Assembly (NCBI GenBank): GCA_965603825.1 | Contig: CBFDEM010000022.1 | Coordinates: 124,001 to 188,000 of the forward strand | Length of the DNA: 64,000 nucleotides | Direction: 5' to 3' | Origin: Blepharisma stoltei ATCC 30299 | Taxonomy: Eukaryota > Protista > Ciliophora | Shown: positions 36,722-40,930 of the stretch, piece after piece | Numbering within the stretch: the first letter of the stretch is position 1 | Layout: every line of letters starts with the position of its first letter | Position numbers and translations under genes: made by a program | Notes under the pieces: generated by a model | The model's input: the letters and a program-made list of their open reading frames with translations, nothing else | Database searches by the model: none | Told to the model about the DNA's origin: nothing

Positions 36722-37921
36722 ATGGAAAGTGACCTAAAAATAGGCTCCCGCGTTCTCTGCAAATGGACTGATGGGAAATACTGTAAGACTTATTTAGATC
36801 CTGCTGAAATTATCCATGAGCGCCCAATCCCCAGTCATGAATTTTACATCCATTATCTTACTTTCAATAAGCGTCTAGACACTTGGGTAGCTCCTGATCA
36901 AATTGCTCCTATGCCTCCAGAAAGTGAAAAGACTCCAGAATCCATCGTCACCCGCTACAATAAAAGAAAGCGCGAAGAGCTCGACCCAGCCGAGCACAAT
37001 GAAGATTGCACTAACCCAGAACTTACCCAGTTTGAGAAAGACCACGAAGAGAACACCAAAGTCAGAAACGTTGATCGGATCGTCCTTGGCCGATATGAAA
37101 TTAGTCCATGATACTATTCACCATATTTGTCGAGATATCCCCAGATACCCACACTTTATATATGTGAATTTTGCCTCAAATATATGAGGCATGGCTCTAC
37201 TTATAAGGAACATATAAAAAAGTGCACATATAAACGACCGATGGGGAAAATGATATATAGGGATAATGTTAATATTGGGAAAATCAAATCAGTAAGTGTG
37301 TATGAGGTTATGGGAAATGAGCATAAATTGTATTGCCAAAACTTTTGTCTGCTGGCGAAATTGTTTTTGGATCATAAAACACTTTATTATTATGTGTCGC
37401 CATTTAAGTTTTATGTGCTGACTGAAGATTCGGGAAAATGCTCTAGAGTTGTAGGGTATTTTTCTAAAGAAATTGGAAATCACGAATATAACTTAGCATG
37501 TATTTTGGTATTGCCACCATATCAGCAAAGAGGTTATGGGCGATTCTTAATTTCTCTGAGCTACGAATTAAGTAAGAGAGAAGGAAAAATAGGAACTCCA
37601 GAAAGGCCATTATCAGATATGGGTAGAGTTTCTTATAAGTCTTACTGAACTGATACAATTTTAGAAGTAATAAGAGACAGAGGAAACCTCAGTATCAAAG
37701 AAATCACAGATATTACAGGAATTTCTAATCATGATGCAATGGAAACACTCACTTCGTTGAATTTAGTCAAGTATTGGAAAGGACAATATATAATGAACAT
37801 TGCAAACCCTAAAATGATTGAAGAGCACTTCAAGAAGAAGGAACAGAAGAAAAAGAAACTCAAAGTCTGCCAGATTAAATTTGATCCTAGAAAGCTAAAC
37901 TATACTCCTCCTAAATCTTAA
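36722..37921 (+). CDS. MYST histone acetyltransferase with chromo-barrel domain (Esa1/Tip60/MOF type)
   Basis: FYIHYLTFNKRLDTWV, P[W]YYSPY, LYICEFCLKY, LLAKLFLDHKTLYY, NLACILVLPPYQQRGYG, GTPERPLSDMG, SY[W]. Confidence 0.95.
36783..36797 (+). other. 15-nt frame-preserving intron
   Basis: gtaagacttatttag matches the other tiny introns; splicing gives DGKYYPAEII, as expected for the chromo barrel. Confidence 0.75.
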
Positions 37922-38169: not shown

Positions 38170-39713
38170 TTAATGAGCGACCTGAGCTCTCTTCATTTTC
38201 ATAAAGTTTCTGAAGTTTTGGATCAGAGTTTTATGTAAACGATTCACATCTTCATTATCTTCATCTTCATAGTTTTCATTTGATATTTCACCTTCTGCAT
38301 TATACCAAATTCCTTTTATTCCTAAGTACCTTCCCCACCCATGATCATATTTCTGATAACTGTACCTGTCCAAGTAAATTTTCTTTCCACCTCTCCCCAC
38401 TCTCCCTCTCAGCTTGAGTTTCCTTTCAAGATTTGTGTGCAGCTGAGGTGGCATTTGCTTGCTCTCTGAAGAAGTTACTGATTTATTGCTTATCAAAGGC
38501 CACAGATTCAGCTTTTCCCCTTCAGTAATCAACAAGCAGCAAGCACGAGCCACATCGAACGACAAATGGCTCTTCTTCTGAGGTTCAGGTCTAGCTCTTT
38601 TAATTGGCTCCACAACTGGCTGAGGAATTGGCTTTGGCGGGGCAATTGGCGGGGGCGCGCTAATTGTTGTCTCTACAGACTTATAAGATGACCTTAGCTC
38701 TTTAGCAGTTTCAAGGACTTTTGCATCCAGCACGATATTAGGGATTTCTGAGGGCTTTCCTAGCTTATCAGCTCTTTCATGCTCAAATGCCAGAATTCTT
38801 GCATCAATAATGTACTTTTTCAGAACTTCTCTTGCGTTTATTGCTTTGAAAATCAGCTTTAGCGTTTCCAGCTGCTTTTGGAGGTTTTTCATCTGCATTA
38901 CCCTTACTTTTTCATAGCACTCTGAATCATTTTTCTTGGAATTCCTGAGACGCATTTTCTCTCGGTTTTCATTGCGAGATTTGAAGACAGTCTTTAGGTT
39001 CGCATCAGTCACCCCCTCACTGTTCCAAAACCTTCTTAATAAAGATCTTCCGAGGCTTGTTCTTCTGTTTTTTCAATAATTGTACAGGTTTTCTATAGCG
39101 TTTGAGGCTATCGACGCATTTTCAGGCCTTTCCCAGTGGTCGTTGACTTTTTTATCTTTGAGGAGATAAACAGCTCGCTCCAATGGGATGATTTCTCCGT
39201 CTCCGACGTCTTTTTCCCAGATATCTATGCTGGTTTCCAGCAAATGGACATTCATGATGTTTGAGCTTACCCTGAGGTCATTGGCGACATGGCAAAGGTA
39301 GTCTAAATCCTCGTCAACTGCTTCGTATTCGACTATAGACTCTAGCTGCAGCTCGCTTGGCGCCAGATACCTGTGGAAATAGCCTGGCCTGTGATAGCTT
39401 TTTGTAGGCATGCTATAGGCACTTAGTGTCTCAATGATGGGAACAGAGATGTTTGGGATGCGTGGAACCTTGAGATCTGCTTCAATATCATCTCTTTCAG
39501 TGCTGAGTAAAAGTTTGCGGTTGTGATCAACCGTACGCGGCCGGGTAATATGGCGGCTCTTGGTTATACCTATATGTGTAAGCACATCTTATCAGAAAAA
39601 TAGGGCTCTGGCGCAGAGACTTGGAAAGTTGTATGTAGGTTAAATAAACTTCCTGAAGCTTTCTGACCAGATTTCCCATGAAAAATGTTGAACTTACCTT
39701 TATCTAGCTTCAT
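38170..39713 (-). CDS. EPL1: Enhancer of polycomb-like protein (Epl1/EPC); exons 39698-39713 and 38170-39569 (471 aa)
   Basis: RPRTVDHNRKL, VEYEAVDED, LYNY[W]KNRR, VFKSR..KMRLR, RGRVGRGGKKIYLDR; the 5' exon MKLDK joins in frame through the 128-nt intron. Confidence 0.85.
39570..39697 (-). other. Long (128-nt) structured intron
   Basis: G|gtaagt donor, catatag acceptor with A at -6; simplest way to give the Epl1 frame an ATG; several internal complementary segments. Confidence 0.75.
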
Positions 39714-40930
39714 GTTCTTTTTCTGGGTTGTCTTCTAAAATTGATTTTGCCCTGGGGCTATAATACAATTTAAATGGATTTACACTTTTTGGACCTCTTC
39801 TCGGTCAGAAAATAATTAAAAGGATGTAGATATTTAATTAGCTTACTTTCATTAATTTGTTTAAGTGTAGAGCAAAGAAGCACTTGATTACACCTTTTTC
39901 AGAATTTTATCAAGATTTCTGGGAGATCTCTAGATGCTGTTTGAATTACTCAATGAAGCATTAAGACAAAAATTGATTCAAAATTGATAAACTGTTTGAA
40001 ATTTAGAATAATTCTGGCTTAGTCTTTATTCTTTTTTGTAAGGATTTATAGTTGATTAATTTTAACTTTCTATCAAGATTTAATTGGGAATAATTTTCTA
40101 GAGACATTGAAGCTTTATTGCTATAATATCCCAATATCAGTTTTTAAATTTTAAAAAATCGAGTGTTTTAATTCAATTTTTTTTCCTTTTTAAACAATAA
40201 AAATTTATTTTTTGCAGGCTTTTATGCATCAGAATTGCCAAATTTAAATATTTTCTTTAATAAAGCTGAAATCATTCATTGGCTTAGTTTATCACCTCTA
40301 AAATTGCTTATAGAAATTTTTATTTTAATAGGGTTTTACCTTGGAAATATATTTTATAAATTATCTAAGATATCTTTGGATTTAGTAATTTATAAATCAA
40401 AATACTAATAGCAAAATTTTATTCAATGAATATGAGAATTCTAAAGAATAAATATGATTTAAGAGAATTAATATAAAAGTATATCAGAGAGGCTACCAGT
40501 TTAAGCGGCTTTAATTAAATTATTAATTCAAAAATCAATTAATACTTAACTTAAAACAATAATCTATTTCATATGCCATCTGATGAAGCTAAAAATACTT
40601 GAGAATAATTTGATATATTTTAGAATTAAAGTGAAGGTTATATTTATAAGAAAAATGTTTAAAAAATTACAAATTGCTAATATATAATTATATTCACTAT
40701 TGAAAGCAACAATAATTTATACTACGAATTCTTCATAAAAATTTATTCCAAACCTATTCTAACACAAATGATTTTTAATATAGATACAAAATTTCTGCTA
40801 GCTTCAGTGAAGCATTTAAAGTTCCCTAAAAACAATTTTTAAATTATTTATTCACAATTTTTACATTATTTTCTCACTCAATTCCATGAAATATTTATTA
40901 AATCATAATTATAATTCAAAGGGTTATTTC

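Follow-up and report, generated by a model that had tools for sequence, protein, structure and literature searches.

Why should a gene begin with a 128-nt intron in a genome whose introns are predominantly 15/16 bp? The question is raised by an Epl1-like gene of Blepharisma stoltei, which lies on the minus strand of the 64,000-nt stretch of macronuclear (MAC) DNA analysed here, hereafter the window. The tiny introns of heterotrichs have been described in Blepharisma and Stentor (10.1101/2021.12.14.471607, PMC13685798, PMC9505925); in B. undulans 15-bp introns make up 79% and 16-bp introns 10.5% of the total, and splicing frequency has been reported to drop as intron length grows in both Blepharisma and Stentor. 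The first-pass annotation of the window had placed an intron about eight times the local norm, a figure that agrees with the published 15/16 bp, close to the start codon of the Epl1-like gene (intron 1, Table 1). We find that intron 1 is an ancient U2-type spliceosomal intron, which stayed long while nearly all other heterotrich introns became 15-16 nt or were lost.

Evidence of splicing was obtained from an MMETSP transcriptome contig (L001), which comes from a close relative (95% nucleotide identity) and not from the B. stoltei strain itself. This contig was found by a word-indexed protein search through its 170-aa open reading frame (ORF) P0001, which begins MKLDKGITKSRHITRPR (MKLDKG). Bases 1-55 of L001 match window positions 39749-39695 with 100% identity and bases 47-1485 match positions 39575-38122 with 95% identity, which gives exactly the junction 39698/39569 predicted by the first-pass annotation from the ATG, exon 1, the GTAAGT donor, the acceptor and the GT ATA join, all of which are present in the sequence. 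The 15 nt of intron 2 are also absent from L001, and the contig is therefore a processed mRNA; intron 2 has been spliced out although it could be translated in frame, as VRVMQ, without meeting a stop. Judged from this alignment, intron 1 is a real intron that is spliced out and gives the Epl1-like ORF its start codon. The frame of exon 2 (ITKSRHITRPR...) is indeed closed on its upstream side by a TAA and offers no ATG before the RPR motif. When both introns are removed, the coding sequence runs to 466 codons with a single terminal stop (genetic code 4; local frame check), an in-frame TGA within exon 2 (39075-39073, ...LYNY-W-KNRR) being read as Trp. Retention of intron 1 yields a 47-aa peptide that ends at the acceptor TAG, again as annotated. 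The sole transcript seen for the gene, L001, is fully spliced; word shares of 0.74-0.78 were found for RNA runs X1-X4, a measure that is blind to the difference between spliced and retained RNA. Excision at the DNA level, as an internal eliminated sequence, was rejected, as intron 1 is present in the 64-contig MAC assembly of B. stoltei (41,464,486 bases) and in contigs of DNA from 11 further organisms, and only the transcript is without it, the same transcript that is also without the 15-nt intron.

The signals of intron 1 are those of a U2-type GT-AG intron: removal of the GT...AG segment restores the frame, and a donor matching U1 is combined with a predicted branch site near the acceptor. 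Together with the end of the exon the donor (AG/GUAAGU) can form eight consecutive Watson-Crick pairs with the canonical 5' end of U1 (ACUUACCU), and the U2 of this genome carries GUGUAGUA, the branch site being complementary to U2 GUAGUA. The CTTAC of the window is the probable positional homolog of the CTAAC/CTGAC found in orthologs, and hence the probable branch site. Intron 1 falls outside the heterotrich tiny-intron class, which is defined by a length of 15-16 nt, rarely 17, and a branch A 10-11 nt from the donor.

A combination of protein searches and contig look-ups led to a set of 12 distinct introns at DNA loci from five lineages. The source organisms look like heterotrichs from their sequences, and L008 reads TGA as Trp. 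Further cluster members added only identical introns or loci without exon 1. Across the four lineages compared, the identity of the encoded proteins is 34-49%, the fifth (L037) lying outside that comparison. Intron 1 measures 128 nt in the window and in a second Blepharisma species (L002, positions 2495-2622), 131 nt in L016, 98 nt in each of L008, L011 and L040, 97 nt in L015, 96 nt in L035, 93 nt in L037, 89 nt in L005 and 82 nt in both L014 and L038, so that length is steady within lineages (128/128; 98/98/98/97/96; 89/82/82). The MKLD(K/Q) micro-exon recurs, with synonymous differences, at all 12 loci, where the intron phase is constant, and all 12 introns place a yeast-like branch site (CTAAC, CTGAC or CTTAC) 8-10 nt from their end, followed by TAG/G; the donor is GTAAGT in 11 of them and GTAAGG in one. 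A central hairpin begins 10-31 nt past the donor in every case. The second intron of the gene, at a conserved ...EK/M... site, could be read in L002, L011, L005, L014 and L015; it is 15 nt wherever readable, in contrast to the 82-131 nt of intron 1 across all lineages.

Comparison of the two Blepharisma species showed intron 1 to be 69.5% identical with no indel, whereas the four-fold degenerate sites of the flanking exon were 35% identical (17/48), a value taken to be close to saturation. Intron 1 is far better conserved than synonymous sites and steady in length within lineages; by these comparisons it is under purifying selection.

Intron 1 is single-copy in the B. stoltei genome. Pattern searches over the 41 Mb returned 11 instances of the signature GGTAAGT-N(30-150)-CTDAC-N(4-6)-TAG, against 90 for the reversed control. 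Of these 11, the Epl1 site alone was found on inspection to link an exon close to a start codon with a long ORF (465 open codons). A pattern as strict as this would overlook long introns that carry other signals. The best other candidate for a long intron, L019, was rejected because it is non-coding on that strand. As a separate observation, the strong-donor signature is about eight-fold rarer than its reversed control genome-wide, which suggests that canonical splice-signal combinations are avoided in this genome.

The RNA of intron 1 was found to hold a conserved and unusually stable stem. The minimum free energy (MFE) of the window intron is -32.7 kcal/mol, with a z-score of -3.87 from the folding tool (0/200 shuffles as good) and -3.63 from separate shuffling (0/300 as good), and L002 gave -4.30 and -4.58 by the same two routes. 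By way of background, 160 random 128-nt segments of the window had a mean z of -0.10 (standard deviation 0.97, minimum -3.03). The consensus of the Blepharisma pair consists of four helices with no disrupted pair, two compensatory and three one-sided changes, and is predicted to be a three-way fold; because of its G-U pairs the structure sits on the sense RNA. Column shuffling of the alifold alignments gave the Blepharisma pair a z-score of -4.46, with 0/500 shuffles as good; for L008/L011 the value was -2.5. When the splice signals were held unpaired and only the interior was shuffled, all 12 orthologs beat their shuffles (z -0.41 to -4.04, mean -2.63).

From one lineage to another the stem sequences are wholly different. 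In the most densely sampled lineage, the basal stem of 7 bp is fixed in position while its pairs switch among A-U, G-C, C-G and G-U. An alignment of nine sequences guided by a covariance model (CM) showed five of the seven basal-stem pairs changing on both sides, 76.6% of cells pairing as compared with 64.4+/-3.0 in shuffles, and a covariation score of 0.318 against 0.183+/-0.032, with 0/500 shuffles as high and all slid controls lower. The pairings named in the first-pass annotation all occur, either in the MFE structure or in the two-species consensus, and the check that it had proposed came out in favour of structure on both counts, with a fold that beats shuffles and a hairpin that covaries in other heterotrich lineages. 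None of the outcomes it had listed as fatal was observed: intron 1 is spliced, the protein does not start at GTG 39585, and the fold is not at the level of shuffled controls lacking covariation.

Table 1. Features of the Epl1-like gene, its first intron and its surroundings, in window coordinates.
Feature	Position	Strand	Description
Start codon	39713-39711	-	ATG
Exon 1	39698-39713	-	ATGAAGCTAGATAAAG; MKLDK and first base of a Gly codon
Intron 1	39570-39697	-	128 nt, GTAAGT...CTTAC...TAG, phase 1
5' splice site	39692-39697	-	GTAAGT
Helix P2, 5' strand	39660-39666	-	UCAGAAA; from the two-species consensus structure
Apical hairpin P3	39619-39659	-	two compensatory and two one-sided changes relative to the second Blepharisma species
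Variable segment	39601-39618	-	own small hairpin in each Blepharisma species, CUCUG/CAGAG in the window; hairpin register differs between the two species (from alignment)
Invariant block	39570-39600	-	31 nt, 100% identical in two Blepharisma species; holds a U-tract, the P2 3' strand (39592-39598), the branch site and the 3' splice site
Nested GT...AG unit	39570-39585	-	16 nt, GTGCTTACACATATAG
Predicted branch site	39578-39582	-	CTTAC, A at 39579, 9 nt before the last base of the intron
Intron 1, 3' end	39570 (last base)	-	...CTTACACATATAG, acceptor ...CATATAG
Exon 2	38908-39569	-	begins GT ATA ACC; N-terminal EPcA-like part of the Epl1/EPC homolog
Intron 2	38893-38907	-	GTAAGGGTAATGCAG; ordinary 15-nt heterotrich intron, A at position 10
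Exon 3	38170-38892	-	TAA stop at 38172-38170
5' untranslated region	39714-39749	-	as in the transcript of the relative, whose 5' end maps to 39749
Upstream block	39750-39800	-	about 50 nt, probably the core promoter
Convergent neighbour	36722-37645	+	Tudor-knot, zf-MYST and MOZ_SAS domains; tail-to-tail with the Epl1-like gene

On comparative evidence, the conserved sequence, the steady length within lineages and the covarying basal stem show the stem-loop to be maintained by selection. We propose, with a probability that we put at about 0.55, that this stem-loop influences in cis how its own intron is spliced and so sets the output of productive Epl1 mRNA. The stem-loop would pack the interior of the intron into a compact, self-contained and inert module, leaving the donor and the branch site free and within reach; such help would matter because the spliceosome is reported to be less efficient as intron length grows, and the module would thereby set the amount of productive Epl1 mRNA. 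For most lineages other than Blepharisma the prediction is an unpaired donor, one that is also less paired than when the interior is shuffled (donor pairing of 0.15-0.34 in lineages B and C, as compared with 0.45-0.56). Two versions of this proposal seem to us about equally likely: the stem-loop may be a constitutive helper for an intron that is trapped at its long length, or it may tune splicing efficiency, with a premature stop as the result of retention.

Several points weigh against our proposal. The z-score of L011 is near zero. The covariation rests on few sequences, and because the CM alignment was fitted to the structure its numbers lean towards structure; in the two-sequence Blepharisma alignment the pair-count test was not significant (138/500), a test that has no power at n=2. 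The first-pass suggestion that the fold shortens the effective length of the intron gained no specific support, as the Rogic-type structural distance from donor to branch site in eight orthologs was 10-30 as compared with 18-27 in shuffles, with 5 to 96 of 100 shuffles as short or shorter depending on the ortholog. With a distance no shorter than for shuffled interiors, a simple 'zipper' role likewise lacks specific support. A helper role alone also does not explain why the intron never shrank.

The strongest competitor, to which we would give something like one chance in five, is a dedicated splicing switch or dosage device, in which stop-containing transcripts would arise either by retention under regulation or because the nested 16-nt unit supplies a proximal donor that competes, and a protein or condition would modulate the RNA fold and so gate the output of Epl1, and hence of NuA4. 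The dead-end peptide produced on retention would suit such a device, as would the long length kept in all lineages beside a tiny intron 2 and the lack of any other convincing intron with the strict signature in 41 Mb. In Blepharisma the donor and the branch site are moreover predicted to be paired with each other, and the first-pass annotation had counted this stem over the donor as a structural feature. However, the donor pairs with its partner (GUAAGU/GCUUAC) at a probability of 0.85-0.89 even when the interior of the intron is shuffled; the complementarity is intrinsic to the two signals, as the branch site resembles the 5' end of U1, and the donor stem is therefore not a designed feature. 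The middle base of the branch site varies among A, G and U in the orthologs, and the donor is accessible in most lineages. The nested unit gives a similarly mixed picture. A GT lies exactly 16 nt before the intron end in 10 of the 12 orthologs, even where the branch site is shifted by 1-2 nt, against a background GT frequency of 0.056 (first eight introns), but it is missing in two lineages (CA in L035, GC in L037). It had appeared universal in the first set (8/8), a view that was given up once further orthologs were added, and it may represent extended branch-site context or the vestige of a 16-nt intron. The earlier description of the unit as out of frame holds relative to ATG 39713 but not relative to ATG 39679, with which it is in frame; the latter codon is unconserved, being absent in L002 and in seven other orthologs checked. 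The fully spliced state of the sole transcript also speaks against a switch.

It is less probable, though still worth naming, that the hairpin serves some purpose other than splicing and that the intron is simply its host; a stable intronic RNA, a precursor of small RNAs or a site to which a protein binds by shape could be the case. The conservation of hairpin shape while its sequence turns over, the conserved intron length and an 8-mer common to three distant lineages (AGCCTTCA) would all fit. Searches for a known RNA element, as the first-pass annotation had advised, found no family above noise in Rfam (the noise-level hits were SNORD43 with 13.9 bits, on the opposite strand, and SNORD15 with 22.4 bits, located elsewhere) and no tRNA with ARAGORN. 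An intron-encoded small nucleolar RNA was rejected, as the orthologs share no conserved C/D or H/ACA boxes, and the lack of conservation of loop and stem sequences between lineages argues against a guide or any sequence-specific RNA.

A more far-reaching idea, which we regard as slightly less likely again, is that intron 1 would be a lineage-wide dosage controller of the NuA4 scaffold, with the covarying hairpin deciding between a productive outcome, use of the distal donor that matches U1 perfectly, and two unproductive ones, use of the nested GT-AG cassette of tiny-intron size or retention. Feedback could possibly be exerted by an RNA-binding NuA4 component, for example the Tudor-knot of the adjoining Esa1-like acetyltransferase.

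We disfavour, as improbable, the view of intron 1 as a neutral relic that escaped loss or shrinkage and whose stems are chance features of a 100-nt RNA. It is true that 5'-proximal introns are those that persist in heterotrichs, that random sequences of such length also fold and shorten the path, and that L011 has a z-score near zero. A relic is nevertheless hard to reconcile with 69.5% identity beside 35% at four-fold sites, with the absence of indels and the 31-nt invariant block, with z-scores that are negative in 12/12 orthologs and a stem that covaries, or with a second intron that is 15 nt in every lineage examined. Lastly, a wrong gene model, starting at GTG 39585 or at an ATG 39679 joined in frame by removal of 39585-39570, an intron of normal size, is already refuted by a transcript that starts MKLDKG and skips all 128 nt, as well as by the poor conservation of ATG 39679 and the micro-exon found at all 12 loci.

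Our preferred reading, a stem-loop acting in cis on splicing, can be set beside several known systems. Autoregulatory structured first introns, such as that of yeast RPL30, are 5'-proximal after the start codon, have structure near the donor and give rise to unproductive unspliced RNA; for intron 1 there is, in contrast, no known RNA-binding regulator, and its donor pairing is incidental. One of the two closest likenesses is to the yeast zipper-stem introns (RPS17B/RP51B and others; PMC2536676, PMC12350175), which are likewise long for their genome, with a strong donor, a UACUAAC-type branch site and internal stems that beat shuffles and are conserved across species, and for which a role in their own splicing efficiency has been proposed. 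Here, however, the genome norm is 15-16 nt instead of 100-500 nt, the intron is an apparent one-off, and the Rogic-type shortening of distance is not seen in intron 1. With the tiny introns of the same organisms intron 1 shares GT-AG ends, U2-type machinery and a similar 3' end (A at -6, then T-W-TAG), but it differs from them in being 82-131 nt long and GC-richer, in its GTAAGT in place of GTAAWW and in its explicit CTNAC branch site. The other close likeness is to the fused branch-site/3' splice-site motifs of intron-poor eukaryotes (Irimia and Roy 2008, PMC2483917), with which intron 1 shares a strong branch consensus set at a short and almost constant spacing from the acceptor (here CTNAC, 4-6 nt and TAG) in a lineage that has lost most introns; intron 1 is the opposite case inside such a lineage. 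No long structured intron of this size is described in the Blepharisma and Stentor intron literature cited above, while structured spliceosomal introns themselves are known.

Two U1 small nuclear RNA genes, about 90% identical, were observed in the genome. One (L028, G000:C29:114848-115008, minus strand) and the other (L029, G000:C18:451628-451788, plus strand) make up a pair in which one U1 is canonical, with the 5' end UCACUUACCUGG and 87 bits, and the other is a variant (UCAAUUACAAUGG) that scores 55.9 bits, under the Rfam cut-off. The AAUUAC arm of the variant would base-pair with GUAAUU, in line with the tiny-intron consensus GTAAWW, while the canonical ACUUAC arm matches GUAAGU, which is the donor in the long intron of the Epl1 gene. 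One rather unlikely possibility, from these sequences, is that the two U1 variants serve two donor classes and that intron 1 is a rare client of the canonical one.

Assignment of the host gene was made by three routes. Pfam and PDB searches with the two protein pieces of the window, split at the TGA, returned no match. The full-length ortholog P0006 gave a weak match to Pfam EPL1 (E 0.084), and human EPC1 was the top PDB match of a four-sequence profile, again weak (E 0.017), over the YxYW...RNSKKND region; in addition, EPL1 was named in 30/30 of the nearest named Atlas clusters to P0006, with scores up to 0.97 (alignment-free). These lines are concordant, each being weak or alignment-free, and the gene is a probable homolog of Epl1/EPC (Enhancer of Polycomb). 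The convergent neighbour is, by its domains, an Esa1/Tip60-like MYST acetyltransferase. In NuA4 the Esa1 and Epl1 proteins are direct partners. The second Blepharisma species (L002) has also kept the MYST/Epl1 adjacency, but the other lineages have not. Directly upstream of the transcript 5' end lies the block listed in Table 1 as a probable core promoter, which is nearly identical in both Blepharisma species and includes a 26-nt GTAAAT...TATAG string; further upstream the two species become unalignable.

The locus also exposes a practical blind spot in gene prediction. The published B. stoltei predictor picks spliced reads by a regular expression that takes two-digit gap lengths only, so introns of at least 100 nt, and with them intron 1, are absent from the published annotation. 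Metagenomic callers misread the gene in other ways. At L035:1017-1112 (and in L036) the 96-nt intron 1 is a multiple of three and stop-free, and it was translated through (P0017, MKLDKGKSIFFPGP...); at other loci the protein was started at a GTG inside intron 1 (P0002, MLTHIG; P0015). Intron 2 of L005 is stop-free as well and was read through as VKTKQ in P0006. As callers start in or read through intron 1, metagenomic protein sets carry intron-derived residues for the Epl1 gene.

The heterotrich spliceosome has been seen as tuned to 15-16-nt introns, with longer introns spliced poorly and tiny ones leaving no regulatory room. Intron 1 provides a natural counter-example, being 5-8 times the norm, long in at least five lineages and endowed with an RNA structure under selection, while the other intron of this gene has 15 nt. 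Intron 1 offers a defined substrate for asking how a tiny-intron spliceosome handles a canonical long intron and whether the structure is required, and it bears on whether the dosage of a chromatin regulator is set at the splicing step.

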